The notes under the pieces are model-generated. The model had not been told where the DNA came from. It searched no databases and saw only the letters and a list, made by a program, of their open reading frames with translations. Below, in pieces: positions 2,806 to 61,992 of a stretch of 64,000 nucleotides of DNA (the first letter of the stretch is position 1; each line of letters starts with the position of its first letter). Location: the sequence record OR258281.1. One strand, 5' to 3'. The position numbers were made by a program, and so were the translations under genes.

Positions 2806-3243
2806 ATGTATAAATTAACACATTCTGATGTACTGAGGATGATTGAAAATAAAAATCCACATCATCTCTTCGATTACATTAATGCAAAAGTACTACCAGA
2901 TAGTAATAATAAAATACTATTATCACATCTGAGAGAAACAATAAATTTACGTAATTCTGTAACATACTTTGGTATTTTCATTCCAGTAGAAAATATAATG
3001 GATTTAAAAGCACCAAAGGTATTCAACCTACTTGATGATGGTACTATTTTACATAATTCATATAGTACAACGATGGTAAGAGAGTCTCATTATTTTGATC
3101 CTGAAGATAAAGGTACTCAATTTAATTTTAACTTTATGTTCCCTGAACTTGGTATAAGTCTAGATGAAATTAACAAATTACTTGTGTTTTTAAAACATGT
3201 CCAAGTTAACATATTTTGCACATACGAGACAAAAAACAAATGA
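2806..3243 (+). CDS. FN-motif family small protein
   Basis: 145 aa; KGTQFNFNFMFPELGISLDEI motif near C-terminus. Confidence 0.75.
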   Translation: MYKLTHSDVLRMIENKNPHHLFDYINAKVLPDSNNKILLSHLRETINLRNSVTYFGIFIPVENIMDLKAPKVFNLLDDGTILHNSYSTTMVRESHYFDPEDKGTQFNFNFMFPELGISLDEINKLLVFLKHVQVNIFCTYETKNK

Positions 3244-3461
3244 AAATCCGAGTAGTTGAATATATCAGAGCACATGATGAAAAAGTATGGTACGTACCTC
3301 AGTACCGAAGATGCTTTATATGGTTCAGGGTTCCTAGTTATGGAGAGTTTTGCAAATTCTATAAAACTTTTGAAACAAAAGAAGAAGCATTAGCCCATGC
3401 TAAATTTATTTTCAGGGATAATTCAGTCATCAAACGGGTAGTATGTAATGGGAATGACTAG
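3240..3461 (+). CDS. Hypothetical protein
   Basis: Start moved to ATG 3240 (ATGA overlap); 73 aa. Confidence 0.7.
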   Translation: MKIRVVEYIRAHDEKVWYVPQYRRCFIWFRVPSYGEFCKFYKTFETKEEALAHAKFIFRDNSVIKRVVCNGND

Positions 3462-3999
3462 AGACAAAGTACGAGAAATACTTTATTCAGCTAATGATTT
3501 ATCATGGAATCTATATCCACTCCAAGTAAAAGATACCAGAATAAATGAATTATTTGAGTACTTTAATTCTATTTGCAGTACAAAATTTAAACCTATCAAA
3601 GATCCTTGTGAGTTTGATATTCTATATGATCTTCATATTAGTAGTTCTATAGAAGGATTGCACGAGGAAAATGAATATGATGAATATGGCATGAAAATAC
3701 ACGATAGTTATGACAGTACTAAGTTTTTTATTTCTTGGATTGATATTAAAGATGATAATGTTTTACATATCATGGATCAAGATGAGAACCAGCATACATT
3801 CAGTATAGCTGATGATGAATTTAGCATTTTACTGGTTTTGAGTTCAATTTCCAGTGTAAACATTTCTTTTCAGGACTTGGTTACTTCATGTCGTGAAACT
3901 AAAAAACTTGAACTATTAATCTCTGCTGAAATAAGAAAAGAAATTGATAATACACTTCTAGGTGCAATAAAAAATTATCAAAAGAAGTTACAGAAATGA
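3448..3999 (+). CDS. Hypothetical protein (possible divergent FN-family member)
   Basis: 183 aa; DDEFSILLVLSSISSVNISFQDL weakly resembles the family motif. Confidence 0.7.
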   Translation: MGMTRDKVREILYSANDLSWNLYPLQVKDTRINELFEYFNSICSTKFKPIKDPCEFDILYDLHISSSIEGLHEENEYDEYGMKIHDSYDSTKFFISWIDIKDDNVLHIMDQDENQHTFSIADDEFSILLVLSSISSVNISFQDLVTSCRETKKLELLISAEIRKEIDNTLLGAIKNYQKKLQK

Positions 4000-4452
4000 C
4001 TTATCTAGAATTGTTTTTAGCAGCGGCTGAAGAACCAGAATTAACATTATATGATACTCTTATTCAAAAAATAAGATCGGATTGTGATATTAATGACCAT
4101 GAGTATATCTTAAAGTTCAACTATACAGATAAAACTATGATGAGAAGTCAGGTACAATATTACACTGGTAGTTCTGGAGTTAGGCTTAGATCATTTACCC
4201 ATAACCTAAGTTATCAGCTTCATTATTTTGAAGAAACCAATTCTTTATTTTTCTTTGATTATACTTATAATTTAAAAAAAAGGAAGAAATTATGAAGGTT
4301 TCTTTAATACCGAAAGTATTGCCGAAATAAGCTTCAACTTCAATATATTGTTTCCAGAAGTACCTTTCGACTTTGAAGTACTACTTAAATTGGCAAAAAT
4401 ATCATCTGAGGTTGGTTACAAGATGTGGTACGGATATGAGAAAAAAGACTAA
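3996..4452 (+). pseudogene. FN-motif family gene split by a frameshift at an A8 run (4274-4281)
   Basis: Removing one A fuses ORF 3996-4295 to the +1 frame YEGFFNTESIAEISFNFNILFPEVPFDFEVLLKL...KKD*, giving a 151 aa family member. Confidence 0.75.
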
Positions 4453-4651
4453 AAAGATTTTAATTGTAAAAGGAGTACTAAAATCTAACGGAAAAGTAAT
4501 GTATACAGCTATGCATAAAACAATATTTGGTTGGAAATTTGTTAGTTCCGGTAGTTTTTGGTGGGATAGTGAAAGTAAAACATTAGATATTATGTCCCAA
4601 TACCTATCAGATTATGAAATTATCCATTGTGGTACAACAATACTAAATTAA
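4436..4651 (+). CDS. Hypothetical protein
   Basis: Likely ATG at 4436; 71 aa. Confidence 0.65.
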   Translation: MRKKTKKILIVKGVLKSNGKVMYTAMHKTIFGWKFVSSGSFWWDSESKTLDIMSQYLSDYEIIHCGTTILN

Positions 4652-4656
4652 AAAGG

Positions 4657-4686
4657 TGAAACATGTCGGCATTATATGCTATACTA
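4657..4686 (+). promoter_or_regulatory. Phage promoter TGAAAC(G/A)-N16-TATACTA (copy 1)
   Basis: TGAAACA 4657-4663, TATACT 4680-4685, same spacing as four other copies. Confidence 0.65.
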
Positions 4687-5468: not shown

Positions 5469-5692
5469 AATATCTAATTATGTTAGTCTTGTCTTTTATT
5501 CTGGTCGGTTGTTATGATTCAAGTGATGAATGTTCTGTCGTACCCACACGGTCACAAATGGAACAGGGTTCCAGATTTTGTTTAGGTAATTATAATGTAA
5601 AATCTTTCACAACTGGCGAAAATAGTTCGTTTAAAGTTGTATGTAATAATGGCAACAGTGCTGAAGTAATTGTTAAATTAGGAACAGAATAA
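5465..5692 (+). CDS. Putative lipoprotein
   Basis: Lipobox ILVGC; further Cys pair FCLGNYNV...VVC. Confidence 0.7.
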   Translation: MKYLIMLVLSFILVGCYDSSDECSVVPTRSQMEQGSRFCLGNYNVKSFTTGENSSFKVVCNNGNSAEVIVKLGTE

Positions 5693-6846
5693 TGTCTTAT
5701 ATTCCAGAAAAATATTATGTAGGATTTCAATCTAGAGGGCAGGATTCGCTTCTAGGCTTCTTTACTCCAGATGATGGTGATTCTGCTAGTACTAAGCGTA
5801 AAGTTACAGTCGATAAGTGGTCCAGTGATAAAATCAAATCCGCTGAGATTACTAATACCCCGCGTACAGGATTCCGAATTGTAGATACTGCAAGACGTGG
5901 GCGAACTAATAATGTATTGTTCCGTATTATTCATCCAGAAGTAAATGCTGAATTCGAAATCAGTGCTGAAAACCTTAATGAAATCCACCAGCATAATATT
6001 ATTGAATATGGTGAGATTAAGCGTGAAATGGTTCTGGTGCGTAATGGTACTGAAAATTACCTAACTCACGTAGGTTCAACTCAGTACAATCGTGCAATTG
6101 CTGATATGAAAAAAGAAAAAGAACGTAAAGAACAGATCAGTAGTATTTCTAAAAAGGATGTTAAGGTACTTGATACTGTTACCCTTGCATCTGATAGTTA
6201 TCACAAATACATTTATCTTGGTCACACAGAGCTTTCGTGGCTGGAAATTGAACAAAAGTACTCAAGACATAATTATTATTCACATAATCCAACAATTCTT
6301 GATATTCCTACGTTTAACAGTATTGAAAAACATTATATGTTTTATTGTCCAACCAATTATCAACTAAAAGTACTAAAGTCATTTCCTAAGATTGTTGAAG
6401 TAACTTCTGGTAATAATAAATTTTCTGATATATCTGAATTACAAGATATAAAGGTAAAAATGATTATTAAAGGTGCATCTGATTATATCCATAAACCAAT
6501 GTTTTTATCATTTAGCTCCAGAACAAAAGATGATTATGTGATTGAAATCGTCGAGAAAACAGATTCTATGGCTAACGATGGTCTTTATATTAAACCAGAT
6601 TTATATGATTACCACGGGTTAATGTGTCAGGTTCAAACTGAACGTAATTACCAAAATGTTACTATTACTACAGCACAGAATGTTTATAGTGTACAAGACA
6701 ATGAACTAAAAATGGAAGAAATTCGATTTAGTAATGCTGATAGTTATCATGAACCTATTAAAACTTTAATCAAGAAAAATAAATCATTTGAAATTGATAT
6801 TACTAATGCAAAAACTTATATTGTTAAAATCAGTGAGAAAAAATAA
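5692..6846 (+). CDS. Tandem paralog 1 of 4, unknown function
   Basis: 384 aa; shared N-terminal NTP-x-GF...IHP...EISAENL...GEI module. Confidence 0.85.
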   Translation: MSYIPEKYYVGFQSRGQDSLLGFFTPDDGDSASTKRKVTVDKWSSDKIKSAEITNTPRTGFRIVDTARRGRTNNVLFRIIHPEVNAEFEISAENLNEIHQHNIIEYGEIKREMVLVRNGTENYLTHVGSTQYNRAIADMKKEKERKEQISSISKKDVKVLDTVTLASDSYHKYIYLGHTELSWLEIEQKYSRHNYYSHNPTILDIPTFNSIEKHYMFYCPTNYQLKVLKSFPKIVEVTSGNNKFSDISELQDIKVKMIIKGASDYIHKPMFLSFSSRTKDDYVIEIVEKTDSMANDGLYIKPDLYDYHGLMCQVQTERNYQNVTITTAQNVYSVQDNELKMEEIRFSNADSYHEPIKTLIKKNKSFEIDITNAKTYIVKISEKK

Positions 6847-7901
6847 TGGCATATATCCCTAACAAATTATATTGTGGTTTTAAATCTGAAAGTTCAGATT
6901 CACTTGTTGCATTTATGACCCCTATGGCTGAAGATTCAGCCTTTGCTAAACGCAAGAGTTCTGTTGATTCGTGGCGTGATAATAATTTACAAACACTTGA
7001 ATTAGATAACACTCCAATGCTGGGTTTCCGCTTTGTAGATACTTCCCGCCGCTGGAATAGTAATAATGTAGTTTTTCGTGTTATTCATCCGGGTGCTGGT
7101 GCAGAATTTGAAATCAGTGCTGAAAATCTTTGTATGCTAATGGAAACATGCGATATTATTAAAGGTGAGATTACTACTAAACTACTACTAATTCGTGATG
7201 GTTCTAAAAATGTTTTAGTACCAGAGAATTCAACTCTACATTTAGGTGCAGCTAAAGTAGATGCAAAAGGACGTGAGATTTACGTAGATAAATCACTTGT
7301 AAAAGTGGGAAGTGCTATTACCGTTAAAAGTTATGGTAAAGTTGTGAACTTTGATAAAGAACAGATTCATACTGTTCGTGTTGAAGTTAAAGAAACACGT
7401 AATAGCCTTAATCAGAGTTATAGTTATGGTATGACCAGATATTATGACTTCATTATTTCGGAACGAACTATTAACGAATTTATTATGTTTGATGAAAAGT
7501 CCAAGATTGTTAAGACATTGACAACTAGACCTAAAGTACTTGCACTTGAAGGTCAGACTTCATTAACCAAGGACGATTTAATTGGTAAAAGCTATTTGTA
7601 CTATGGTGAACATGTTTATGCTTATGGTGATATTAGTACTAAACAATTCAAATATGAATTAGTTAAATTTGATCCAACTACCGAAAGCCATAATCATAGT
7701 TATATTATTTTGAAAACCAATACTGGTGAAATGCATATTGGTTCATATAACAAATGGCATAAAAGATTTGATTCTTTTGGTGAAGTTGTTTTTGATGAAA
7801 ATTCTGGTGAACTTCTTCCAAAAAATGGCAATTTTGCATATGGTACACCAGCTTTAGTACTAAGTGGCGACTATTATTATATTGCTAAGGTTGAGGTATA
7901 A
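6846..7901 (+). CDS. Tandem paralog 2 of 4
   Basis: 351 aa; NTPMLGFRFVDTSRRWNSNNVVFRVIHPGAGAEFEISAENL. Confidence 0.85.
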   Translation: MAYIPNKLYCGFKSESSDSLVAFMTPMAEDSAFAKRKSSVDSWRDNNLQTLELDNTPMLGFRFVDTSRRWNSNNVVFRVIHPGAGAEFEISAENLCMLMETCDIIKGEITTKLLLIRDGSKNVLVPENSTLHLGAAKVDAKGREIYVDKSLVKVGSAITVKSYGKVVNFDKEQIHTVRVEVKETRNSLNQSYSYGMTRYYDFIISERTINEFIMFDEKSKIVKTLTTRPKVLALEGQTSLTKDDLIGKSYLYYGEHVYAYGDISTKQFKYELVKFDPTTESHNHSYIILKTNTGEMHIGSYNKWHKRFDSFGEVVFDENSGELLPKNGNFAYGTPALVLSGDYYYIAKVEV

Positions 7902-8971
7902 TGAAAACTCCACAGAAACTATATTTCGCTCTTAACTACAATTACGAAGCTATTCGTGGATATGTTGTTATTGCTGATAAACAACATACTAAAGGTTATC
8001 TGGATAAAAAAGCCCGTGCTGATCGTTCTGCTGGTCAGAATTGTAAAGAACTATTCCTTGATAATACACCAAGTGATGGCTTTCGTGTAAGTGATTTTGA
8101 TTATAGCGGGATGTTCTGGATTGAACATCCACAAGGGTTTAACGTAAGTATTACTGCAAGAAATATGTATGATTTAATGCGTACCAGTACCATCATTAAT
8201 GGTGAAATACAAAATAAACTTTATTTTGATATGGATTTGAATCTTATTTCTGAAGTTTCAGAAATTCTTGCTAGTAATGTTGCAGTTGAAGAGAAACGTC
8301 AAGCCCAGCAGAAAGCAGCTAAAGAACTAAAACTCAATCAGAAGTTTAGTATTCCAACTTACAATGGAAGTAATGAATATATCTTTATCTCTCGCCTGCA
8401 TGTAATGGAAGCTACTAAAGAAGGTGGAACCTTGCCACCAAGCACTTCTAAACTACAATATTTGTACTTTGACCCAATTAAAAGCGTATTCATTACGAAT
8501 ACGGAATTAAACATTACGTTACAGGATAGCTATGAAGATAGCTTACATTTCAGATCCTTAGAACATGCACTGCGTGAGTTCAAAAACTTTAATATAAGTT
8601 CAAGTAATAATATAATTGCTGTAAGTGCAAAACCAATTAAGTACAAAGATATCAAAACCCGATTCGTTGAAACTCCACTAAGTGAATTAGTATTTTCAAA
8701 TAACTACCCACGTCTTTCAGTAATTGAAGAGAATGGTAATTATAGATTTTTAGGCAGAATTAATAATAAGAATGGTCAAAACATTACATATGACCAAGCA
8801 CTAAAAGAATTTGCTGTTGTATTTGACGTTTTCCATTTAGTTGAAGAAGATGGTTTGACATTACGTACTCGTAACTATTGGTATTATTCAAGAAGTTCTA
8901 ATAATTGTATCACAGTTAATGATGTTGAAAAGTTACCATTTAAAACAGGATATTTAGAATACTATATATGA
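7901..8971 (+). CDS. Tandem paralog 3 of 4
   Basis: 356 aa; NTPSDGF...IEHPQGFNVSITARNM...INGEI. Confidence 0.85.
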   Translation: MKTPQKLYFALNYNYEAIRGYVVIADKQHTKGYLDKKARADRSAGQNCKELFLDNTPSDGFRVSDFDYSGMFWIEHPQGFNVSITARNMYDLMRTSTIINGEIQNKLYFDMDLNLISEVSEILASNVAVEEKRQAQQKAAKELKLNQKFSIPTYNGSNEYIFISRLHVMEATKEGGTLPPSTSKLQYLYFDPIKSVFITNTELNITLQDSYEDSLHFRSLEHALREFKNFNISSSNNIIAVSAKPIKYKDIKTRFVETPLSELVFSNNYPRLSVIEENGNYRFLGRINNKNGQNITYDQALKEFAVVFDVFHLVEEDGLTLRTRNYWYYSRSSNNCITVNDVEKLPFKTGYLEYYI

Positions 8972-17335: not shown

Positions 17336-17357
17336 CTAAGGGAGTCTTAGATATGAA
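17336..17357 (+). promoter_or_regulatory. 22-nt RBS hairpin, identical at nadM and nadV
   Basis: CTAAGGGAGTCTTAGATATGAA = CTAAG-GGAGT-CTTAG inverted repeat; identical copy at 19030-19051. Confidence 0.7.
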
Positions 17358-18447: not shown

Positions 18448-18454
18448 GTAATTC

Positions 18455-18480
18455 AGAGTACCATATATTGGTACTCTTTT
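18455..18480 (+). terminator. Intrinsic terminator
   Basis: AGAGTACCA-TATAT-TGGTACTCT then TTT. Confidence 0.75.
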
Positions 18481-18495
18481 AATTGGAACTGTAAA

Positions 18496-20772: not shown

Positions 20773-21276
20773 ATGACAAACATTTCCGAGATAACCATGG
20801 CTTTGCTAAGGTTTAAGTCCAATAGCAAAAATTGTGTGCCAGAGAATGAGATTAGTTCATTTTCTAGCATTCTTGATAAAAATAAGCATACCAAAGATAG
20901 AGTTAAGAACATGAAGCATTTCAGAAAATCTGATGCTGATTGGGAATATATTGATAAGTGGTATGATAAACGTTTCAGAATTCCGTATAAACCTGCTCAC
21001 ATTAGAGGTAAGTACAAATTAGTTATCATGCAATTTATTGATGATATATGTTATACATACACAATTACCCCAAAGAAATTTGAAATAACTTACGAAAATA
21101 ATAAAACTGATTATATACTTATTTCTAAACATTCTTATCAAGCAATAAGTACTGAAGAGTTGTTTAATATAAGATTAGGGCATAATATTTTGGATGTTAG
21201 TACTGAAAATATTAATAACATCAGAAGTATTATGTGTAAGAAAAAACGTGCAAATTATACTGTAATTTTAAATTAA
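20773..21276 (+). CDS. FN-motif family small protein
   Basis: STEELFNIRLGHNILDVSTENI; likely ATG 20773. Confidence 0.75.
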   Translation: MTNISEITMALLRFKSNSKNCVPENEISSFSSILDKNKHTKDRVKNMKHFRKSDADWEYIDKWYDKRFRIPYKPAHIRGKYKLVIMQFIDDICYTYTITPKKFEITYENNKTDYILISKHSYQAISTEELFNIRLGHNILDVSTENINNIRSIMCKKKRANYTVILN

Positions 21277-22512: not shown

Positions 22513-23070
22513 ATGGCGTATCTTTTAGCTAATTTAAGTGCTGATGTTATAATTAAAGGTTTAGCTAATCATAAGAGACGTTCTTTTTCTAACAGGGACA
22601 GAAAAGAAAGTGATTTGATTGAATTTCAGAACATGGGTATTTCCAGATACAATAACAAACAGTTTCAGAAAATCTATAGACATTTTGGTTCTCATGATAA
22701 AGCAGCAACTTACTATAATAAACATAATGCATGGTTCAGAAACAAACATTATAAGCTAAACATGGGTACTGACAAATATCAATTTCATATAGTTGATATT
22801 TTCGATAAAAAAGCGATTTACTACACCTTTACGGCTAAGTACTTTGAAATAGTATTGAGTGAAGATAGTAAAAGTGAAGAAGAATGCTTAATTCGAATCG
22901 ATAATTATAACGATATAGATATGGATTTATTGTTTAACTTATCATTAATGCATGATGTTATTCTATTCAAACCACAAGACATTATTACAGTAAAGAAAAT
23001 TTTGGAACAAAAGCCAAAAGGAATCTATACTATCTGTAGTACACAAAAATGTGTTGACCCTTGGGATTAA
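22513..23070 (+). CDS. FN-motif family small protein
   Basis: DMDLLFNLSLMHDVILFKPQDI; ATG 22513 with GGAG SD. Confidence 0.75.
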   Translation: MAYLLANLSADVIIKGLANHKRRSFSNRDRKESDLIEFQNMGISRYNNKQFQKIYRHFGSHDKAATYYNKHNAWFRNKHYKLNMGTDKYQFHIVDIFDKKAIYYTFTAKYFEIVLSEDSKSEEECLIRIDNYNDIDMDLLFNLSLMHDVILFKPQDIITVKKILEQKPKGIYTICSTQKCVDPWD

Positions 23071-23071: not shown

Positions 23072-23488
23072 ATGAACTTACTTAAAGATTACATTACAAA
23101 AATCATTGATGTTTATAAGAATAATTCAAGTACTAATATTATTCGTAACACTGATAAAAAAAGCAAACAAAATATATTAAGTACCTTACATATAAGTACG
23201 TTCTATTATCCATATATTGTTAAAATTGATTTTCATAATTCTAATAGTATGGTTATTATTAAGTCAGATAAAGTTACTATTTCAAATTCATTGATGGATG
23301 AAGTACTAGTCGAAGATGATTCTGATATTTTTAACCTTTCATTAGAACGGACTGTACCTGAGATTAATTTTGAAATTATCAATTCAATCAGGGAAAATAT
23401 GAAAGACTTTTCATGTGATTCATTAATTGATATTGCGATTTGTTTGGATATTGAATATTACACTGAAGATAAAGTAGAGGTAAATTAA
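23072..23488 (+). CDS. FN-motif family small protein
   Basis: DDSDIFNLSLERTVPEINFEII. Confidence 0.75.
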   Translation: MNLLKDYITKIIDVYKNNSSTNIIRNTDKKSKQNILSTLHISTFYYPYIVKIDFHNSNSMVIIKSDKVTISNSLMDEVLVEDDSDIFNLSLERTVPEINFEIINSIRENMKDFSCDSLIDIAICLDIEYYTEDKVEVN

Positions 23489-23815
23489 ATGCAAATGTTT
23501 ATTCCTTCAATTGGCACTGAGATAGTACTGACAAAAGATTGGAAATTTAAATTATTTTTTGAGCACCGTAACGATTCTCTAGTTGAGTACTTTAAGCTAA
23601 CAGCCCCAAGTGGTTCCCGTTATATATGGGATGAGTATGAAGAAGTAACATTACCTGAAGGTACTGAAATTAAAATCGACCGTCTTTATATTAAGAAAGG
23701 TAATTCATGTTATGATAGTGTTAGTGTGTATGCCAAAATCCCCGGAGAAAAGAGAAAACGACGTTTTTGGGTTAAGTTGCATGATTTTAATACAATTATT
23801 TGCGATGTAATTTAA
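23489..23815 (+). CDS. Hypothetical protein
   Basis: 108 aa, GAGG SD. Confidence 0.8.
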   Translation: MQMFIPSIGTEIVLTKDWKFKLFFEHRNDSLVEYFKLTAPSGSRYIWDEYEEVTLPEGTEIKIDRLYIKKGNSCYDSVSVYAKIPGEKRKRRFWVKLHDFNTIICDVI

Positions 23816-24234
23816 TGAAATTCAAAGAAGTACTTCATATTCTTCATAAAATAAAAAAGAACGGTAAATCCTATTTTCGAAATTCATATGATGAAGATGA
23901 TACTATATTTCCACGTGGATATTCATTAGTAAATCAAAATTCTTTGGGACCAAGAAAGTTCTATCTTGAAATACTTGAAAGTCATTCATCAGGATTCATT
24001 ATAACTAATAAGTACATTAAGTACTTGAATAAAGATACAGTAGCTTTTGATAGCACTACAATGAACGATGAAGATTACTTCAACTTGATGTTAATTAAGC
24101 CAGATATTCTATCACTGGACGAAGTTAAATACATTCAGAAGTACGCACGTTCATTTAAACCAAAATTTTATTATGTTACCTATACTTTTTTAATGGGACA
24201 GAAGTTTTGTGATTTGCTAAAGCAGGAATATTAA
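23815..24234 (+). CDS. FN-motif family small protein
   Basis: NDEDYFNLMLIKPDILSLDEV. Confidence 0.75.
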   Translation: MKFKEVLHILHKIKKNGKSYFRNSYDEDDTIFPRGYSLVNQNSLGPRKFYLEILESHSSGFIITNKYIKYLNKDTVAFDSTTMNDEDYFNLMLIKPDILSLDEVKYIQKYARSFKPKFYYVTYTFLMGQKFCDLLKQEY

Positions 24235-28433: not shown

Positions 28434-28664
28434 ATGTTCTTTACTATTGTTGGTGTAATTGTAGTACTGATTATCTGCGTATATTGCCTGTTATTGGGAG
28501 TAACAATGTTTCTTGGTAATCTAGCATTAAGTAACAAGGGCGGTGAAATGTGGTTCGGGTTAGTACTGATTGTATCTAGTCTGTTCATAGGTTACGAGAC
28601 TATTCATAATAGTTTTAATATCAGTTTTTCAATGCAAACTACGGAAAGTTCTGGTACTAAATAA
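28434..28664 (+). CDS. Two-TM membrane protein
   Basis: Two long hydrophobic segments in 76 aa. Confidence 0.7.
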   Translation: MFFTIVGVIVVLIICVYCLLLGVTMFLGNLALSNKGGEMWFGLVLIVSSLFIGYETIHNSFNISFSMQTTESSGTK

Positions 28665-29134
28665 TGAAACATTTTTTTGAAATAGTAAAACTAATCAATA
28701 AACTTTCTTCTAAAAATCTTTATACAAGAAGAAAAATATCTAAAATGGGTTGGTGCCATTCAATACACTTCAAATATTTTGATTCGATTAAGAATAGATA
28801 TATTGGAGCTAAGTCTTGTAAGTTTGGACCTAAACTATATGATGTAGAAGTATATTTCTTGAATAATAAATTAGTTATTACTGGTCAAAATATTAGGGTA
28901 TACAAATTTGTAGAAAACAATAATTTGTTTATAGATGCAGATGCCGTGTGTATTTTTGATTCAAATGAATTTACGAAAAGTGATGAATTTAATCTGAATC
29001 TTAGTACTAATATGGAAATTAGTGCAGCAGAGATTATTGCACTTCGGGATTATATTCACAAAAATAAGAGACTTCATAATAAAAAGATTAACGTTTTTTA
29101 TTATGGAATTGACCACATAGTAGGATTGGTATGA
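28664..29134 (+). CDS. FN-motif family small protein
   Basis: TKSDEFNLNLSTNMEISAAEI. Confidence 0.75.
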   Translation: MKHFFEIVKLINKLSSKNLYTRRKISKMGWCHSIHFKYFDSIKNRYIGAKSCKFGPKLYDVEVYFLNNKLVITGQNIRVYKFVENNNLFIDADAVCIFDSNEFTKSDEFNLNLSTNMEISAAEIIALRDYIHKNKRLHNKKINVFYYGIDHIVGLV

Positions 29135-29580
29135 AAAATAAAATACTCAAACTGCTTAGAAGTACTCTCAAGAAAAATTATAAAGCTAACTATGATGAGT
29201 TCGAACCTGCCATAACTGTTAAGAAACATGGAAAATGTTACTTAGTCAGAGGCAAACCAAATAATTTATATATAGCATATAGGAAGCCAAAACTATTAAA
29301 ACTTGGTCCTATTAAGTACCAATTAAGAATAATCTTTGACAATAATACTATATCTATTAATGCTAAACATATAACAATAACTAATTCGTATAAAAGAATA
29401 TTTCATAATAGTACTATTAGTTCTGAAGACGTTTTTAATCTATCAATGCGATATAATCTTGAGTTTGACATTGATACTATAACTAATGTCATAAAAGAAA
29501 TATCTAGTAATAAAAAATATCATAATAAACTTATAGTAATATACATCGGAAAGTTCGGTGATGAACTTATACCAGCATAA
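29131..29580 (+). CDS. FN-motif family small protein
   Basis: SSEDVFNLSMRYNLEFDIDTI. Confidence 0.75.
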   Translation: MKNKILKLLRSTLKKNYKANYDEFEPAITVKKHGKCYLVRGKPNNLYIAYRKPKLLKLGPIKYQLRIIFDNNTISINAKHITITNSYKRIFHNSTISSEDVFNLSMRYNLEFDIDTITNVIKEISSNKKYHNKLIVIYIGKFGDELIPA

Positions 29581-39017: not shown

Positions 39018-39386
39018 ATGGACATTGAAAAACTAATAAAGAAAGCAATACAAGTCCCTGACCCTCCTAAAAGTACTTCCTCACGAAAACGACATAAACT
39101 ATTAGCATGTGCACTTGACAAAAAAGGTCGAGTGCTTGCTATTCGTAGTAATGATTATGAATGTTCTCATCCTGTGCAGAAGTACTTCGCTGAAAAAGTT
39201 GGAAGACCTAATGCAATTTATCTTCATGCGGAGATAAGTTGTCTTGTTGCTTCTAAAAAAGATGTATATAAAATGATAGTGGTTAGGGTAGATTCTGACG
39301 GTAATCCGGTACTGGCTAAACCTTGTAGTATATGTCAGGCAGCTATGAAAGAATACGGAGTGAAGGTAATTGAGTACACTATCTGA
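39018..39386 (+). CDS. Zn-dependent cytidine/deoxycytidylate deaminase-like protein
   Basis: LHAE...AKPCSIC motif; 122 aa. Confidence 0.75.
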   Translation: MDIEKLIKKAIQVPDPPKSTSSRKRHKLLACALDKKGRVLAIRSNDYECSHPVQKYFAEKVGRPNAIYLHAEISCLVASKKDVYKMIVVRVDSDGNPVLAKPCSICQAAMKEYGVKVIEYTI

Positions 39387-39810
39387 ATTTTATAATGAAC
39401 TGTACAAAATAATGATTTTTCTTGCTGAGACTGATTTTCAGAAAGAAAAGTTAATTAGAAATGAGTACGGTTATAGCGTCGTTTATGATAATGATTTTAT
39501 TAAGATTAGTAGTACCAGAGGACTTATTACAGTCGAAAATAACGTTAATCATGATCACACTAGAGTTTTTAGAAATGAAATAATAACAGGCATAAAACCT
39601 GATATGTATATTACCTCATGGGAAACTAATATACGTGAGTTTGATGATGATGTTTATTTTAATCTCAGTTTATTAGGTGAAATTCCCACGAAGGAACATA
39701 TTGATTTTGCATTAAAATTGCATAATTATGGTTATATCCATGATAAAACTTTTATAGTTTACCCTAAATTTATCAATATTGAGACGTTGAGAAATACAAA
39801 GTATGAATGA
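39370..39810 (+). CDS. FN-motif family small protein
   Basis: DDDVYFNLSLLGEIPTKEHI; start uncertain. Confidence 0.7.
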   Translation: MSTLSEFYNELYKIMIFLAETDFQKEKLIRNEYGYSVVYDNDFIKISSTRGLITVENNVNHDHTRVFRNEIITGIKPDMYITSWETNIREFDDDVYFNLSLLGEIPTKEHIDFALKLHNYGYIHDKTFIVYPKFINIETLRNTKYE

Positions 39811-40366
39811 TGAAATTATGCAAGAAATATTACGTATATATAATTCATATCATCATAGTACATATATCGATCCGCGAAGATATGACAAAATGTCTTTATC
39901 AAAAATGTACAAATTTGATAATTCTTATAGAATTGAAGTACGGAAAGGATTGATACTTGGTAACGTAGTTAACATTTATAATGATGACGATAAAAAATTA
40001 ATACAAATGTATACACGTGAAATGTTAATAGATCGTAATAGGTATTGGTACTTACTACCAGATTATTTTAAATTTGGTCCACCAAGATTACCATTACGTA
40101 CAAAAGGTTTAGATGAAGATTTTATTATAACTAATGAATTAACCAAAGATGAATACTTTAATATATCCCTTGTTAATAGCATTACATCTTTTGACAATAT
40201 ACAATCAGTACTAAAATTTAATACTCCTGAATATTTTAATAATCCAAAATTATTTGGAATTATTGCTTTTGACGGATATGATTTAGAAAAACTAAAAAAT
40301 ACAACATTAGAGGATTTAGATGAAAGAGTTGGAAACAGAATTGTCGCGAGTAGTAAAGTATTTTAA
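39803..40366 (+). CDS. FN-motif family small protein
   Basis: TKDEYFNISLVNSITSFDNI. Confidence 0.75.
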   Translation: MNDEIMQEILRIYNSYHHSTYIDPRRYDKMSLSKMYKFDNSYRIEVRKGLILGNVVNIYNDDDKKLIQMYTREMLIDRNRYWYLLPDYFKFGPPRLPLRTKGLDEDFIITNELTKDEYFNISLVNSITSFDNIQSVLKFNTPEYFNNPKLFGIIAFDGYDLEKLKNTTLEDLDERVGNRIVASSKVF

Positions 40367-40805
40367 CCACGTAGTGAATAATATTGTAGATTGGAAGCCA
40401 AACGGTTCTGTACAGTCATGTGTTATCGAAACTGAAGGATATACAATTCAGTTCGACCGTAAGGTAATTAATGGTGAAATTCAAATGGAACTAATGGATA
40501 AGTACACAACGTTTCTAACTGTTACTAAGCCAAAAAAGAAGAATATTTTCATTGATAATAAAGTAGCACGTGCTGAATATGGCAAGCTTCTGAAGTTCAA
40601 ACTTGGTACTAAAGAATTACGGGTAACTGCTAATATTACTCCTGATGAAATTTTCAACCTTAGTCTGATGCATAATATTGAAATCAACGCAGAATCAGTA
40701 AAATACTCAATGATTGTTAAGAATGTTGCTAACAGTACTAAAAAATTCATCGAAATGAATCTGAATTTAGATTTAGATATGCTCAAAAAGACGATTATTG
40801 TTTGA
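40320..40805 (+). CDS. FN-motif family small protein
   Basis: TPDEIFNLSLMHNIEINAESV. Confidence 0.75.
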   Translation: MKELETELSRVVKYFNHVVNNIVDWKPNGSVQSCVIETEGYTIQFDRKVINGEIQMELMDKYTTFLTVTKPKKKNIFIDNKVARAEYGKLLKFKLGTKELRVTANITPDEIFNLSLMHNIEINAESVKYSMIVKNVANSTKKFIEMNLNLDLDMLKKTIIV

Positions 40806-41895: not shown

Positions 41896-42228
41896 ATGAA
41901 TCAAACTGATTTTACGACTCATAATATTATTAAATGGTTATTTAAAGAACATCATAGTACTGGATTTATCCCCGAATGGTATATCAGTAACCTTAGTGGT
42001 GTAATGGTTAGAAACAATAACAGATTTACATCTTTAATTATGATGAATGATGAATTAACAGTTGAAATACGACCTGATGTTATATTCATCAACGAGCATA
42101 GAATTGAATCAAAAGAAGACTTCTTTAATGTCTATCTAATGTTCGATTTAAATGAATATGAGTACTATACTGAATTAAAGAATTATTTGTCACATTACTA
42201 TGGACAAACCTTCAGGTTTAAAATATGA
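41896..42228 (+). CDS. FN-motif family small protein
   Basis: SKEDFFNVYLMFDL; ATG 41896 with GGGAG SD. Confidence 0.7.
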   Translation: MNQTDFTTHNIIKWLFKEHHSTGFIPEWYISNLSGVMVRNNNRFTSLIMMNDELTVEIRPDVIFINEHRIESKEDFFNVYLMFDLNEYEYYTELKNYLSHYYGQTFRFKI

Positions 42229-42647
42229 ATATTACTAATTATCACAGGTGTCATAATGCTATAAGGAGTACTCTTAGTATTTTAAACGTACCGGAAGTAC
42301 TTGGTAAGTACACTTTACATTCAAAACAATTAAAATATGAAGACGATAATATTTGTATTATTGGTTCTAAAAATGGGTGTTTGCATTCATTATTGAAAAT
42401 AAATTCGGGCATGGTATATCGTGCTTTTAGCTATGATTGTGTTATAGAATTTCTTTTTGGTTCAGACGAAGTTTTTCTTACAATTAAAGGAAAACAACAA
42501 ATAATGAACTTTAACGATTTTGACAAAGAGATACTTTTCAATCTAAATTTAAGCTATGATATTCCGGTAAGTATAGAACAAGTACTTAAACTAAAAGAAA
42601 CGTTCATCAAAATTGAAAGTATAGATATTGGATTAACATTCAAATGA
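42225..42647 (+). CDS. FN-motif family small protein
   Basis: DKEILFNLNLSYDIPVSIEQV. Confidence 0.75.
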   Translation: MNITNYHRCHNAIRSTLSILNVPEVLGKYTLHSKQLKYEDDNICIIGSKNGCLHSLLKINSGMVYRAFSYDCVIEFLFGSDEVFLTIKGKQQIMNFNDFDKEILFNLNLSYDIPVSIEQVLKLKETFIKIESIDIGLTFK

Positions 42648-43036
42648 AAATGTCAGATTTAATAACATGTATAAATGCAATAAATGAAGCACTGGAAATT
42701 ATCAACTTCGATGTTCTAGATTTTGATTATGAAGTTAATGGCCCTTCTATTGAAGCTATTAGTAACAGTACAAGATTGCTAATTTGCAGAAGAAGTTCCA
42801 GTACTGATGTTAGGCTTAGGGTGTTTCTAAATTACCAGAACTATATAAAATTAGACGCATGGGACCGGTTCACAGTATGTGATAAATTAGGCGAAGAACA
42901 TGAAGTAAATCATGAAAATATATTTCATCTTATGATGGATAATGATCATATACTTGACCATACTCAGATTAAAAATCTGGAAAAGCTTTCCAATAAAATC
43001 GATGGATTCAGCATAAAAATCTACCTCAATAACTGA
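42644..43036 (+). CDS. FN-motif family small protein (FH variant)
   Basis: NHENIFHLMMDNDHILDHTQI. Confidence 0.65.
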   Translation: MKMSDLITCINAINEALEIINFDVLDFDYEVNGPSIEAISNSTRLLICRRSSSTDVRLRVFLNYQNYIKLDAWDRFTVCDKLGEEHEVNHENIFHLMMDNDHILDHTQIKNLEKLSNKIDGFSIKIYLNN

Positions 43037-43126: not shown

Positions 43127-43510
43127 ATGGACATTAATGTATTGCGTAAATTAATACGTAAACCACACAAATTAGTACCACTTACCCTTCCATGGGTATT
43201 TAAACGTACAAGACATGTTAATTTGTACAAGGGTAAAATTAAACTTTCACCAATAAGTTTTGGTCCTGAAAAGTACTTAGTAAAGATTACTAATAAAGGC
43301 GGTACTACATTTGTATATAAGAATCGTATTGTATACAATATAGCGAATACCGATGGATATACCAAAATCTTTGATATGAAGAACTTTGATCAAGCTGAGT
43401 ACTTTAATTATACAGTACTGTATAGTAACTTACCTGATTTTGAGTTTATATCCCAAATCAGAGTCTTAATGAATGATCAAAAAAATGTGATTTATCACAT
43501 TTACTTCTGA
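43127..43510 (+). CDS. FN-motif family small protein
   Basis: DQAEYFNYTVLYSNLPDFEFI. Confidence 0.7.
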   Translation: MDINVLRKLIRKPHKLVPLTLPWVFKRTRHVNLYKGKIKLSPISFGPEKYLVKITNKGGTTFVYKNRIVYNIANTDGYTKIFDMKNFDQAEYFNYTVLYSNLPDFEFISQIRVLMNDQKNVIYHIYF

Positions 43511-44960: not shown

Positions 44961-44961
44961 C

Positions 44962-46346: not shown

Positions 46347-46375
46347 AAAAAAGGCACTCAAATGAGTGCCTTTTT
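46347..46375 (+). terminator. Intrinsic terminator (A-tract/T-tract flanked)
   Basis: AAAAAAGGCACTC-AAAT-GAGTGCCTTTTT. Confidence 0.85.
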
Positions 46376-46389: not shown

Positions 46390-46839
46390 ATGAAAGAATC
46401 AGCTTTTAAGTACTTTGAAGATATTATTAGAATGTACAACACCAATGATTTTCCTAAAAATTTTGAGTACAATGGGTGCAATCTTGATTATGATGGTATT
46501 TGTGTTGCTGGAAATACCAATACTCTTGGTGAACACTATACTTCTGACCGCATTAAGTTTTTTAATAACTGTGGAAATGGCATATATGAAGAATTAAAAC
46601 CGCTTATTTCATTTAAGGATGATACCATTACTGGAATTTATCTTAAAGAAGATAGTGATGAAATTGATTATGAAGTACCTATTGATAATGAGGCAGATTG
46701 GTTCAACATCATCACTAGTGTACAAGGGTATGCTATTAGTTACGATGAAATTCTGAGAATTCGTGAAATTATCCAGAAATGTGATAGTTTTATTGAAATT
46801 CGTTATGGATTTGGTGAAGAAGAAGAATATGGATATTGA
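46390..46839 (+). CDS. FN-motif family small protein
   Basis: NEADWFNIITSVQGYAISYDEI. Confidence 0.75.
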   Translation: MKESAFKYFEDIIRMYNTNDFPKNFEYNGCNLDYDGICVAGNTNTLGEHYTSDRIKFFNNCGNGIYEELKPLISFKDDTITGIYLKEDSDEIDYEVPIDNEADWFNIITSVQGYAISYDEILRIREIIQKCDSFIEIRYGFGEEEEYGY

Positions 46840-47263
46840 TAAAGCAAAGTATATTGAATTTTTGAATGAAATGGGATTATTAGATTCATTTGAATATTTG
46901 TTCGATGACGGTACTGTATTATGTAAAGACGAAACCTTTATGGAACTTGGAGACAGAACTGTTGCACATTGTACAAATGATAAAATAATTATTCATGTTT
47001 GTACTGAATCTTACGGACAGGTAGAACTTTCTAGATTAGGTTATGTATTTGCGGAAAATGATACAAAGGTCGTAAAAAATAATACGGAGTACTCTATTAA
47101 TAATAAAGAAGAGTACTTCAATGCCAGTATTTTACTGGATCTTACGTTTTCTTATGATGAAATTCAGTACCTATCAAAATATTATAATGATAGACTAATA
47201 GGTGCCACTTTTTATTATATTGAAGGAGACGAAAAATATACAGGAAACTATCATGAATATTGA
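46829..47263 (+). CDS. FN-motif family small protein
   Basis: NKEEYFNASILLDLTFSYDEI. Confidence 0.75.
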   Translation: MDIDKAKYIEFLNEMGLLDSFEYLFDDGTVLCKDETFMELGDRTVAHCTNDKIIIHVCTESYGQVELSRLGYVFAENDTKVVKNNTEYSINNKEEYFNASILLDLTFSYDEIQYLSKYYNDRLIGATFYYIEGDEKYTGNYHEY

Positions 47264-47699
47264 TCTATTCATTAAGTACTGCAAAGTGCTATCAGAGTGT
47301 GCTAATAATCAATTTACACATAAAATTGACGATAATTTAAGAATTGAATATGGTGATACTACTGTCAATCTATTAAATTTAAACAAAATCGAATCTAAAT
47401 TAGGTACTGATAGTGACACTTTCCGAATAACAGTTTGTGTTGAAACTTCTGATTTCGGGATTTACGATTCTCCCTGCATTTATATATTCGATGAAGATCA
47501 AATTATATTATCGTGTGATAATAATGAGATACATTCTATTGATTCGAAAGATGATTTATTCAATCTTAATCTTCAGTACGAAAATCTCACATTTACATAT
47601 GATGATTTATTAAAGATCCAAGAGGCGAATAGAAAACACAATTTTAAAATAAACATGTTTTTTACTGTAGGGGAGGAAGAATATGCGTCTAACTGTTAG
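47253..47699 (+). CDS. FN-motif family small protein
   Basis: SKDDLFNLNLQYENLTFTYDDL. Confidence 0.75.
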   Translation: MNIDLFIKYCKVLSECANNQFTHKIDDNLRIEYGDTTVNLLNLNKIESKLGTDSDTFRITVCVETSDFGIYDSPCIYIFDEDQIILSCDNNEIHSIDSKDDLFNLNLQYENLTFTYDDLLKIQEANRKHNFKINMFFTVGEEEYASNC

Positions 47700-48219
47700 T
47701 GACCAAATATTTTTAACAGAAATGATGTACTTTACAGTAAATGCTAGAGATATGGCGAAGAAGTCTATTTTAACATTCAATAAAAACTTCTATTATCATG
47801 ATAATACTGTAAGTGGTACTAAATTAAATCTAGAATCTTATAGTTTTGAAAATATTATCTGTAACGGGCCAACATCTGATTATATATTTTTTGAAACTGC
47901 TATTGTAGAAAAAAGTAATAACCCAATTAGCAAAAGTTTGATAATTTATGATGACCAATATATTCCAGAAAATATAACATTTAAATTTGATAATGATAAG
48001 ATAACTTGCCTTAGAACTGTTCACACAAGCGAAATTACTGAAGAACTTATCGTATTAGAATCTTCTTCTGATTTTTTTAATGTAGTTATGACAAATGAAA
48101 GCACTTTAACTTATGATGATCTTCATTTTTTCAAAGAATTATTCAAACAAATTGAAGACCCATTTGAATTAAGATACTTACCACATGAACAATACAAATA
48201 TGGATGGATAGATGAATAA
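47683..48219 (+). CDS. FN-motif family small protein
   Basis: SSSDFFNVVMTNESTLTYDDL. Confidence 0.75.
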   Translation: MRLTVSDQIFLTEMMYFTVNARDMAKKSILTFNKNFYYHDNTVSGTKLNLESYSFENIICNGPTSDYIFFETAIVEKSNNPISKSLIIYDDQYIPENITFKFDNDKITCLRTVHTSEITEELIVLESSSDFFNVVMTNESTLTYDDLHFFKELFKQIEDPFELRYLPHEQYKYGWIDE

Positions 48220-50050: not shown

Positions 50051-50086
50051 ACTCCACATGGTAAATAGTATCATGTGGAGTTTTTT
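50051..50086 (+). terminator. Terminator hairpin with TAAATA late-promoter hexamer in its loop
   Basis: ACTCCACATG-GTAAATAGTAT-CATGTGGAGT then T5. Confidence 0.7.
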
Positions 50087-50101
50087 ATTAAGGAAAATTT
50101 A

Positions 50102-50674: not shown

Positions 50675-50683
50675 GGATAAAAT

Positions 50684-51268: not shown

Positions 51269-51278
51269 AGGAATATAA

Positions 51279-59283: not shown

Positions 59284-59853
59284 ATGCTAAAACATATACC
59301 AAAATCTTTCGTAACCAGACTTCGTTATGAAAGTTCAGACTTTGATCATTTCTGTAAGCAACATGGTAACGTAACTTCTAATGTACTAAAAGAGATTATT
59401 AGTGGTACTTATCTTGAAGAAGATGAAGAACTTTCTAAAACTACTATTAAAACTAGCACATATTTGGATTGTGAGATTTATGATAAGTTATCAGTCGAAG
59501 ACTACTTAACTAAGCTAAAGAATATGATTCAGGAAGCTCTTTCTCTAATAGGAATTTCAGAAGAAGATGTAGTTAGTATTCATTCTAAATACGGTAATTT
59601 AGAATTTGTTGTTTGTTACGAAAGACCTGAAACTGCCGCAGAAAAGTCCGAACGGTTACGTAAAGTTAAAATCCGAGCTAAACTATATGCTTTTTCTTCG
59701 CTTATTCGAAATTACTACAACGAATGGTATAGTGAACAGATCGAACAGGAACGTCTTGCTAAAATTGCTAAAAATCAAAAGCAGTTGGAAGGTCTAGAGA
59801 AACGTCAGGCTGAATTGCAAAAACAGATTGACATTCTTAAGTCTGGAGAGTAG
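59284..59853 (+). CDS. Coiled-coil-tailed paralog 1 of 3
   Basis: FDHFCKQHGNVTSNVLKEIISG...YERPET; C-terminal heptads. Confidence 0.75.
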   Translation: MLKHIPKSFVTRLRYESSDFDHFCKQHGNVTSNVLKEIISGTYLEEDEELSKTTIKTSTYLDCEIYDKLSVEDYLTKLKNMIQEALSLIGISEEDVVSIHSKYGNLEFVVCYERPETAAEKSERLRKVKIRAKLYAFSSLIRNYYNEWYSEQIEQERLAKIAKNQKQLEGLEKRQAELQKQIDILKSGE

Positions 59854-59858
59854 TCTTA

Positions 59859-60074
59859 ATGCATTACGAACATCCATCAGTTATAGGCTGTTCTAATCAC
59901 GGGTGTATTTTAAAACGTCCAGTAGGTATGGGTACTAACGGTACATGTAACTGTATAAGTACCCAAATGCATCGTTCGAAAGTACTAGATACAAAACGAA
60001 CTATCGACTACCTAAGACGTATGTTAAAAGAACGTGATTCTGAAATAACAGAACTTAAAGGTACTGCAAAGTGA
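59859..60074 (+). CDS. Small Cys/His-rich protein
   Basis: GCSNHGC...GTCNC. Confidence 0.7.
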   Translation: MHYEHPSVIGCSNHGCILKRPVGMGTNGTCNCISTQMHRSKVLDTKRTIDYLRRMLKERDSEITELKGTAK

Positions 60075-60619
60075 AAGATGATTTCTCAGAGTTTCTAAAG
60101 CTTAATGTTACTGAGTATAATACTCATGTCAGATTGTATGGAAGTATTGGTTCTAATCGTATAAAAAAGATGATCAATGGTGAAATGCAACCAAATGAAA
60201 GAAAAGAACCAGAACGTAAACTGAGCTATGACACGTTAACTAAGGATTTTACCGCAACAAGTAAAAATCCAGATGAACTTGTTGAGAAATTCAGTATTGC
60301 ACTTCTTCATTGTATTAATACTATTCGCAATGAATATAGTACTTTTAATGAAATTACTAACGTTAGCTTGAACCGTGGAATCAGTGTTTCTTTTACTTTT
60401 TATGAAAGTGAAGAGAGATACAAAGACAATATCAAAGAGTATCAGAGAGTAGAAAGTATTAATGCATTAGTACCATTAGTACAGAAGGCGTTTAAGGTTT
60501 TTACTGATAATAATGACAGACACGTAAGAAATATGCGGCGAGAACGCATTAAACGTCAGCTTACTGAACTGCAAGATGAACTTACTAAATTAGGTGAAGA
60601 AGAAAATGAACAACTTTGA
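60071..60619 (+). CDS. Coiled-coil-tailed paralog 2 of 3
   Basis: EYNTHVRLYGSIGSNRIKKMING...INALVPLVQK. Confidence 0.75.
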   Translation: MKDDFSEFLKLNVTEYNTHVRLYGSIGSNRIKKMINGEMQPNERKEPERKLSYDTLTKDFTATSKNPDELVEKFSIALLHCINTIRNEYSTFNEITNVSLNRGISVSFTFYESEERYKDNIKEYQRVESINALVPLVQKAFKVFTDNNDRHVRNMRRERIKRQLTELQDELTKLGEEENEQL

Positions 60620-61151
60620 TAAAAACTTTTTAAAGTACTTAAATGCAAATGTTCCTGAATTCAACTCCTTTGTACAAAAGTATGGTAAGCCTAGTGTATC
60701 AAGCATTAAACGTTTAATTGCTGGTGATATTATTAAAAATTCGTTTAAAACCGAACGTCAGACTGTAGTGAAAAAAGAAATCGCATATTTTACTGCATGT
60801 CATGGAATGAATGTCCCTCAATTCATTAGTAATGTGCAGGAAATTCTTGAAAATGCCGAGCGTAGTATTCGTAGTGAGAATAATGATTTCAAGCGTATAA
60901 ATGGCATTACTATGTGTTATAATAGTGCAGAAATTGAGTACGAAGTACTGGAAGATATGCATACCTTCAATATCCGCACAAAGGATATTCAGCGTAATGA
61001 TGAACTGAATGCACTAGCTCCATTATTGAAGAAAGGTCTTCAGGACTTCCAGACCAGTTTCAAAGAAAATATTAATGAAATTCGCAAGAAAGCTCTTAAA
61101 GAACAAATCGAATCAATGCAAAAAGAACTTCAAGAACTGGAATCCAATTAA
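60606..61151 (+). CDS. Coiled-coil-tailed paralog 3 of 3
   Basis: EFNSFVQKYGKPSVSSIKRLIAG...LNALAPLLKK. Confidence 0.75.
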   Translation: MNNFDKNFLKYLNANVPEFNSFVQKYGKPSVSSIKRLIAGDIIKNSFKTERQTVVKKEIAYFTACHGMNVPQFISNVQEILENAERSIRSENNDFKRINGITMCYNSAEIEYEVLEDMHTFNIRTKDIQRNDELNALAPLLKKGLQDFQTSFKENINEIRKKALKEQIESMQKELQELESN

Positions 61152-61462
61152 TGAGTAAAAACAAAAAGGTTCAGAAACTTAGTGAAGAAGAAATGCAGGA
61201 GAACATTAAGAAGTACTGTAACGGTACTCCATATGTTATCAAATCTGCATTAGAACTTATCGATGGTGTCGTATCTGAAGAACGTACTGCACTAATTGAA
61301 CTTGGTACTTTACAAAGTTTCGATATTATTGATGTTATCGAAATTTCCAAAAAGGAACGTGAATTCATTATTAAGTACAATAACGGTGAACGTTCTGTTA
61401 CTATCACTTACGGCTTTAAAGCAGGTGACCAATGGGTGAAGACCATCCAGAAATCCCTCTAG
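61151..61462 (+). CDS. Hypothetical protein
   Basis: 103 aa. Confidence 0.7.
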   Translation: MSKNKKVQKLSEEEMQENIKKYCNGTPYVIKSALELIDGVVSEERTALIELGTLQSFDIIDVIEISKKEREFIIKYNNGERSVTITYGFKAGDQWVKTIQKSL

Positions 61463-61992
61463 ATTATGCTCATTACAAGTTAATAAGTACTTTTCTTGAC
61501 GTAATTATTAATGGTTCTGGTATTAATAAAAGAAAAGCTATTCATGAATTGTATTGGAAGACATATCAGGTACAACTGAATACATTACATGATTTCTCAC
61601 TTGAATATCAGTATGATTCTTGGATTATGAATGTTTATGATTTTCATTACAACAAAGGGTTAAGTGAGTACTTTAAAGTTGAAATAAAAGAACATATCTA
61701 TAATTCTGTTGGTATATTTAACGGCAAAGACCAAAAATTATCCAATCTTTGGATAAGGCAGAATAATGTTTTTGTTTTCAGTGATGAAAATGACAATAAA
61801 AACAAATATTCTCCAAATTCAGCCTTGACTATTCCTGTTGATGATGGTCTAATTAATAAAGAAGACATGTTTAACATTTCAATGTTGTCTCCTGTATACT
61901 TTAGTCCTGAGCAGATTAATCTAGGTATTTTTCTGTACAAGTACTTAAAGAATAAAAATCAGAATTTTTTAATTAACTACTATATTGGGTGA
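61432..61992 (+). CDS. FN-motif family small protein
   Basis: NKEDMFNISMLSPVYFSPEQI; start uncertain. Confidence 0.7.
   Translation: MGEDHPEIPLDYAHYKLISTFLDVIINGSGINKRKAIHELYWKTYQVQLNTLHDFSLEYQYDSWIMNVYDFHYNKGLSEYFKVEIKEHIYNSVGIFNGKDQKLSNLWIRQNNVFVFSDENDNKNKYSPNSALTIPVDDGLINKEDMFNISMLSPVYFSPEQINLGIFLYKYLKNKNQNFLINYYIG

Follow-up and report, generated by a model that had tools for sequence, protein, structure and literature searches.

The window analysed here is a 64,000-nucleotide stretch of the Xanthomonas phage XaC1 genome, the plus strand of bases 62001–126000 of record OR258281.1, with 100% identity to XaC1 over a 12.6-kb stretch, and coordinates below and in Table 1 are window positions unless another scale is given. 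XaC1 is a lytic jumbo myovirus of X. vesicatoria with a genome of 348,967 bp, a 32-kb terminal repeat that was put at the start of the record, and 550 open reading frames (ORFs), 426 of which are hypothetical by annotation (PMC11273794). Scattered over the window are small plus-strand genes for divergent proteins that share a C-terminal module built around a Phe-Asn dipeptide. We refer to them as the Phe-Asn family.

The initial annotation of the window had listed 20 ORFs as one such family. All 20 listed starts opened ORFs of the expected size, and the quoted motifs were found there. BLASTP among the window ORFs joined just three small subclusters, so profiles were needed. A hidden Markov model (HMM) was seeded with the four ORFs at 46390–48219 and iterated over the 145 plus-strand ORFs of the window, with the 79 minus-strand ORFs as a control for spurious frames. 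The iteration converged on exactly 19 ORFs, the initial list without the ORF at 3996, and took in none of the 79 minus-strand ORFs. In leave-one-out searches with this window set, each of the 19 scored above the best non-member. When leave-one-out searches were run with the genome-wide set of 53 members described below, 15 of the 19 reached E ≤ 3e-4. The four weakest (at 39370, 42644, 61432 and 2806) still scored above every spurious ORF, with the motif correctly placed. Two other ORFs, at 1344–1568 and 36541–36864, were borderline in some HMM runs; they fell below the final profile, had no motif and were rejected.

Motif statistics gave the same picture. A loose motif (FN, hydrophobic, any residue, hydrophobic, 28–75 amino acids from the C-terminus) occurred in 19 of the 145 plus-strand ORFs and in none of the 79 minus-strand ORFs, with a mean of 3.4 for shuffled proteins. 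Eighteen of these 19 ORFs were family members, the remaining one lying at 60594–61151. In the alignment of the 19 members, the Phe was invariant and lay 34–69 residues from the C-terminus, and the Asn was present in all except the ORF at 42644, where FH replaces FN.

The ORF at 3996–4295 did not match the profile significantly by itself (E 0.4–0.95). In separate searches, the N-terminal part of this region gave an E value of 0.41 and the motif part, in another frame, 0.0027, and the two were collinear with the profile. The copy had been called frameshifted, and the arrangement fits one frame change. The region 3996–4452 may therefore be a decayed copy of the family, which this evidence suggests weakly.

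The annotated GenBank starts of three family genes appeared doubtful. The protein from 20773 (GenBank 20911) has an N-terminus conserved in P0038, a metagenomic orthologue (metagenomic members are labelled P00xx), and the start at 39370 (GenBank 39412) is a TTG codon with a strong ribosome-binding site. The form from 61432 regains the N-terminal helix typical of the family and overlaps the previous gene by 31 nucleotides; either 61432 or the annotated 61549 may be the start of XaC1_244.

Table 1. Phe-Asn family members and T4-like late heptamers in the window. E values are from leave-one-out HMM searches with the 53-member genome set unless stated; L002 and L014 are a close and a distant relative of XaC1; aa, amino acids; pI, isoelectric point; AF2, AlphaFold2.
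Feature	Position	Strand	Size (aa)	E value	Remarks
Member XaC1_134	2806..3243	+	145	0.0022	FN 40 aa from C-terminus; weakly supported
Apparent decayed copy, one frame change (XaC1_137 and downstream piece in another frame)	3996..4452	+			Weak
Member XaC1_163	20773..21276	+		3.5e-6	GenBank start 20911
Member XaC1_165	22513..23070	+	185	5.6e-7	
Member XaC1_166	23072..23488	+	138	9e-8	
Member XaC1_168	23815..24234	+	139	1e-9	BLASTP link
Member XaC1_178	28664..29134	+	156	1.6e-6	BLASTP link; L014 positional orthologue, 26% identity
Member XaC1_179	29131..29580	+	149	4e-8	BLASTP link; L014 positional orthologue, 39% identity
Member XaC1_202	39370..39810	+		0.062 (weak)	Motif in place; L002 orthologue; GenBank start 39412
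Member XaC1_203	39803..40366	+	187	1.3e-5	L002 comparison
Member XaC1_204	40320..40805	+	161	9e-6	L002 comparison
Member XaC1_206	41896..42228	+	110	5e-6	L002 comparison
Member XaC1_207	42225..42647	+	140	3e-6	L002 comparison
Member XaC1_208	42644..43036	+	130	0.016 (weak)	FH for FN; orthologue P0006 also FH
Member XaC1_209	43127..43510	+	127	2.6e-4	AF2 model
Member XaC1_216	46390..46839	+		4e-7	Acidic subfamily; pI 4.2; BLASTP link
Member XaC1_217	46829..47263	+		8e-6	Acidic subfamily; BLASTP link
Member XaC1_218	47253..47699	+		6e-8	Acidic subfamily; BLASTP link; AF2 model
Member XaC1_219	47683..48219	+		6e-5	Acidic subfamily; BLASTP link
Member XaC1_244	61432..61992	+		0.0034	GenBank start 61549
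ATAAATA	25167, 27645, 45367, 49701, 49743	+			Heptamer scan
ATAAATA	16712	-			Just upstream of the lone minus-strand gene, 'major tail protein', 15993-16667

The search was extended to all 1,183 XaC1 ORFs of at least 50 amino acids, and the iteration converged on 53 ORFs, all on the plus strand and none of them minus-strand or spurious. This total is a lower bound; genome-wide, about 10 more sub-threshold ORFs have the motif correctly spaced from the C-terminus. The initial count of about 20 thus holds inside the window (19 and the apparent decayed copy) and falls short for the genome, which has at least 53. The 53 members account for 9.6% of the ORFs and occupy 7.0% of the DNA, and their products are 101–197 amino acids long (median 148). 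The motif dipeptide is Phe-Asn in 51, Phe-His in one and Phe-Ser in one. Sixteen members lie at 37–62 kb of the genome, just past the terminal repeat, 19 in the window and 18 at 302–335 kb, and the whole-genome search placed none of the 53 in the replication and structural core at 126–300 kb. Members occur in runs of 2–5. For 15 of the 53 the best paralogue was an adjacent member (random mean 2.0, maximum 8), and for 22 it lay within 3 kb (random mean 3.4). Tandem duplication in the two accessory arms thus accounts for part of the growth of the family, in support of the expansion proposed in the initial annotation.

The common part of the proteins is a C-terminal module of about 35–65 residues, and the N-terminal parts can barely be aligned. 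The window set was aligned by hhalign to the right-arm set with a probability of 93.7% (E 2e-7, 34 columns) and to the left-arm set with 95.8% (E 7e-9, 63 columns). Since just 34–63 C-terminal columns were aligned, the demonstrable homology rests on the module. The initial annotation had remarked that the N-terminal parts share little visible similarity. Together with the iterative and leave-one-out searches and the motif statistics, these alignments bear out the claim of one family.

In the 53-member alignment, numbered from the Phe, the columns before it hold Lys at −4 (57%), Asp at −3 (60%, acidic in 81%), an acidic residue at −2 (81%) and a hydrophobic or aromatic residue at −1 (94%). The Phe itself (100%) is followed by Asn at +1 (96%), hydrophobic residues at +2 (98%) and +4 (96%), Ser at +3 (53%) and Glu at +13 (53%). 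Hydrophobic columns at +10, +12, +15, +18 and +21 have helical spacing, alternating hydrophobics at −28/−26 and −21/−19 have strand-type spacing, and the overall spacing of hydrophobic columns is typical of two strands and two helices. The module runs in the order acidic cap, helix with the invariant Phe-Asn, second amphipathic helix and final strand. An N-x-S/T glycosylation sequon at the motif was considered and rejected, the Ser being present in just 53% and the acidic residue being out of register.

AF2 models of one acidic and one basic member, based on alignments of 41–45 sequences each, agreed in the order of elements, with a helix at the N-terminus followed by a meander of 5–7 strands, the Phe-Asn helix, another helix and a closing strand. 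The predicted local distance difference test score (pLDDT) was 67 for the acidic member at 47253 and 72 for the basic member at 43127, with a predicted template modelling score (pTM) of 0.62 for both. In the C-terminal half, block-mean pLDDT was 77–92 for the former and mostly 75–89 for the latter. The variable region is predicted to be mostly beta-strand. A short amphipathic N-terminal helix is common to the members in both the alignment and the models. All members lack hydrophobic segments of membrane-spanning length and are therefore presumably soluble. Their isoelectric points range from 4.2 to 9.9, and a strongly acidic character (net charge −14 to −18) is limited to the four at 46390–48219. 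A family of DNA-mimic anti-restriction proteins of the Ocr/ArdA kind was rejected on this ground, as the uniform negative charge of such proteins is not seen across members. The acidic subfamily and its metagenomic relatives P0034 and P0036 have short terminal tails with Gly, acidic residues and then Tyr-Gly-Tyr or a similar sequence, and this acidic-aromatic tail may be a docking tail.

The initial annotation could not name the family, nor could we. Ten members searched against Pfam-A gave nothing above the cut-off, 19 members searched against PHROGs v4 gave just two single matches (E ~0.003), NCBIfam gave a single match at E 0.009, and none of these led to a family assignment; a PDB sequence profile search returned no match at E ≤ 10. 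The proposed structure comparison was run with Foldseek, counting as a fold match E ≤ 0.001 or a template modelling (TM) score >0.5 to a library structure. Against PDB, the two models, which are of moderate confidence, gave best E values of 0.17 and 0.19 with TM ≤ 0.29, and against BFVD the moderate-confidence model of 47253 gave a best E of 0.083 with TM 0.42, to an unnamed protein. Neither model matched a known fold in these libraries.

The rate of evolution was compared between the family and its neighbours. For 11 family orthologues in L002, the median identity was 75%, the nonsynonymous divergence (dN) 0.138 and its ratio to synonymous divergence (omega) 0.24, compared with 94%, 0.031 and 0.11 for 11 neighbouring genes (Mann-Whitney p 0.011). 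Omega was 0.03–0.36 across all 11 orthologue pairs, and a value below 0.4 in every pair indicates purifying selection. The N-terminal part had an omega of 0.27 and 71% identity, and the C-terminal module 0.15 and 80%. In L014, neighbours were 50–83% identical (PhoH 83%, kinase 80%), while positional family orthologues were 23–39% identical. These results show that the family evolves several times faster than neighbouring genes, yet under purifying selection. Of the initial picture of a conserved scaffold with a hypervariable surface, the conserved C-terminal module and the faster N-terminal part stand, and 'hypervariable' is an overstatement with omega below 1 everywhere. The member at 43127–43510 was 98% identical to its L002 orthologue (omega 0.03), with 55–86% for its family neighbours, and appears from this comparison to be unusually constrained.

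Outside XaC1, the family was rarely found. When 1.84 billion representative proteins were scanned exhaustively with the HMM, 33 matched at E ≤ 0.001; about half of these were XaC1 proteins or close relatives, and 15 were divergent metagenomic proteins with local identity ≤45%. A word-indexed protein search with two family alignments gave just 6–7 matches. When metagenomic members were searched by tblastn against 50,697 phage records, P0025 found only XaC1 and P0022 found nothing. A degenerate DNA pattern of the commonest motif hit three IMG/VR loci; none had an HMM match, and they were discarded as chance. The contigs that carry the metagenomic matches, including one of 349,780 bp, are syntenic with XaC1. 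Members hold the same positions there, flanked either by the NAMPT-PhoH-kinase landmarks or by DUF4326 and RlaP, and their copy number at these sites varies among relatives. By this sequence evidence, the family occurs only in XaC1-like jumbo phages, a group known from a handful of metagenomic contigs. The closest isolated relatives of XaC1 by PhoH are the GAP32/Rak2-like phages (47% identity). Cronobacter phage GAP32 shares with XaC1 the synteny of ligase, ClpP, dCMP deaminase, minus-strand tail protein, NMNAT, NAMPT, PhoH and kinase, yet its 41-kb syntenic region has no member (best E 0.19, no ORF with the motif), whereas XaC1 has six there.

With regard to timing, the T4-like late heptamer ATAAATA was present within 90 nucleotides upstream of 17 of 22 XaC1 structural genes and upstream of 2 of 24 runs containing family genes (p 2.5e-6). 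The heptamer is strongly avoided in the window, with five on the plus strand and one on the minus strand versus about 33 expected per strand. As the runs mostly lack the late heptamer and the XaC1 annotation includes a late sigma factor, most members are probably not late genes but early or middle ones, by analogy with T4.

The XaC1 neighbours of members include NMNAT-Nudix and NAMPT, which belong to nicotinamide adenine dinucleotide (NAD) salvage, as well as PNK, RNA ligases, RlaP and Thg1. In metagenomic relatives (L014 at contig positions 1835–4171, and L020/L021), Acb1 and SIR2 are inserted between members at the same locus, and XaC1 lacks both. The initial annotation had placed members beside anti-defence or metabolic genes. 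NAD salvage and RNA repair genes in XaC1 and Acb1/SIR2 in relatives agree with this, but the neighbourhood is weak evidence because about one-tenth of all genes belong to the family. The NAD-salvage pair NMNAT-Nudix and NAMPT occupies the region 17353–20531, and a cREC_REC domain protein (24554–24874) and a PIN-PhoH protein adjoin it.

Several other features of the window were recorded. Two copies of one 18-nucleotide palindromic hairpin (GGCACTCATTTGAGTGCC and its reverse complement) lie at 41858–41875 and 46353–46370 (chance expectation 0.01). Each copy is followed by a T run and stands, with a short gap, directly before a family run (41896 and 46390 onwards); the repeat may act as a terminator or form a cassette for regulation or recombination. 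BLASTP also detected four other sets of tandem paralogues: three genes of 350–384 amino acids before the DNA ligase at 5692–10047, with a similar-sized fourth adjoining; three genes of about 185 amino acids at 59284–61151; two of about 195 amino acids, related to a 911-amino-acid 'structural protein', at 50075–54014; and a pair of about 125 amino acids at 44577–45330. None of these four sets had a Pfam match. The G+C content of the window is 31–37%, compared with about 65% in the Xanthomonas host (PMC11273794). The GC skew is positive throughout, and the plus strand carries nearly all genes.

As to function, the reading we favour, at slightly less than even confidence, takes the members to be non-enzymatic binders that are produced ahead of the late phase. 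The C-terminal module would be a folding core or a common docking element, the variable part would give each copy its own partner, and the proteins, made early or mid infection, would serve host takeover or counter-defence by acting on host proteins or nucleic acids. Most conserved positions are hydrophobic, and polar or charged residues stand at only six (Lys, two acidic residues, Asn, Ser and Glu). Such a set is unlike a catalytic one, which makes binders likelier than enzymes. Several observations weigh against this reading. Omega below 1 throughout offers no direct indication of an arms race. The timing is deduced from a single promoter motif, with T4-type late transcription as the model; one pair (28664 and 29131) lies downstream of a late heptamer (27645), and sigma-70-like sites were no commoner than chance in a consensus scan. 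The AF2 models are moderate overall, and because their alignments overlap, the agreement between them does not count as independent. Guilt by association, too, is weak when a tenth of the genes are family members.

The alternatives differ in what the module and its conserved residues would do. The members could form a repertoire of adaptors or specificity subunits, in which the module docks all of them onto one phage or host machine and the variable part picks the substrates. Conservation restricted to the C-terminal module, charged and polar conserved positions flanking the Phe-Asn, and the acidic-aromatic tails of some subfamilies, a kind that often mediates docking, would all suit such proteins, and XaC1 annotates candidate machines: ClpP (12285–12929), an ATP-dependent Lon-type protease and a ClpS-domain protein. 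However, the mostly hydrophobic conserved positions look like a folding core, no particular machine showed co-variation or genomic linkage with the family, and GAP32 has the same ClpP and synteny yet no family member in the syntenic region, which makes an adaptor role unlikely, though it is the strongest of the alternatives. A more specific form, in which modular adaptors of a novel fold plug into one machine such as phage Clp/Lon/ClpS and each N-terminal domain captures a different host protein, is more doubtful still.

About as doubtful is a place for the members in the virion, as packaged internal or ejected proteins. Sets of paralogous head proteins are mentioned for giant phages (PMC5694885), the common N-terminal amphipathic helix could be a targeting signal, and XaC1 annotates two head proteases; but the late heptamer contrast between family runs and structural genes, an indirect, promoter-based argument, speaks against it, as do the absence of the family from the structural and replication core and the lack of any structural annotation among the members. 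A conserved protease site was not seen, although no systematic search for a cleavage motif was made. An enzyme family has still less in its favour: the Lys, Asp, Asp/Glu, Asn and Ser clustered at −5 to +3 around the Phe could form a small active or metal-binding site, but apart from the Asn none is strictly conserved, there is no conservation of His, Cys or Arg, searches of Pfam, PDB and BFVD gave no enzyme family or fold match, and the huge spread of isoelectric points is unusual for a single activity. That the copies are neutral, functionless duplicates in decay is very improbable; the apparent decayed copy in the window and the copy number differences among relatives would fit, but the omega values in all 11 pairs, the retention of positional orthologues down to about 25% identity and the intact reading frames of 19 of the 20 window copies argue against it.

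Multigene families are familiar from large eukaryotic DNA viruses, for example the ankyrin/PRANC proteins of poxviruses and the F-box, BTB and ankyrin expansions of giant viruses. Found in genome arms, these families evolve fast, originate by tandem duplication and combine a short conserved C-terminal module with a variable binding part. The likeness of the XaC1 family to them is an analogy of architecture only, with no relation in sequence or fold, a bacterial host and no ubiquitin-like system. If the adaptor reading were true, the repertoire would parallel, in a virus of bacteria, the F-box/PRANC substrate-receptor families that large eukaryotic viruses carry. The accessory islands of T4-like and Rak2-like phages (Acb1, NAMPT and NMNAT, RNA repair) share the neighbourhood and the probable non-late timing of the XaC1 family, and in XaC1 relatives members directly adjoin Acb1 and SIR2. 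However, no member matches a known anti-defence family in Pfam or PHROGs, and the known islands consist of unrelated single genes, not dozens of paralogues. Bacillus phage G carries about 35 copies of a zinc-ribbon protein, called 'unprecedented' in a review of 224 jumbo phages (PMC7824862). There, likewise, one small protein family has multiplied in a single jumbo phage genome. The XaC1 family is unrelated to it, lacks a Cys/His pattern, has at least 53 copies instead of about 35, and differs from the phage G expansion in being common to syntenic relatives with varying copy number. The description of XaC1 (PMC11273794) makes no mention of a paralogue family, and the literature searched held no description of the Phe-Asn family.

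With at least 53 copies, tandem arrays, a narrow distribution and fast evolution, the Phe-Asn family is a lineage-specific multigene expansion of a large virus. Expansions of this kind are known in large viruses; this one is larger than that of phage G and has no detectable fold relative. Jumbo phages consist mostly of genes without a known role, and here one unnamed family covers about 10% of the genes of a genome. As a simple improvement of the annotation, one profile could give a name to at least 53 'hypothetical proteins' of XaC1 and to their metagenomic relatives. The family is easily recognised by its Phe-Asn module and, with its defined and alignable natural variants of a single scaffold, lends itself to work on structure and expression. 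Its restriction to one clade, fast evolution and changing copy number are marks of genes at the virus-host interface, which suggests that its members may act there.

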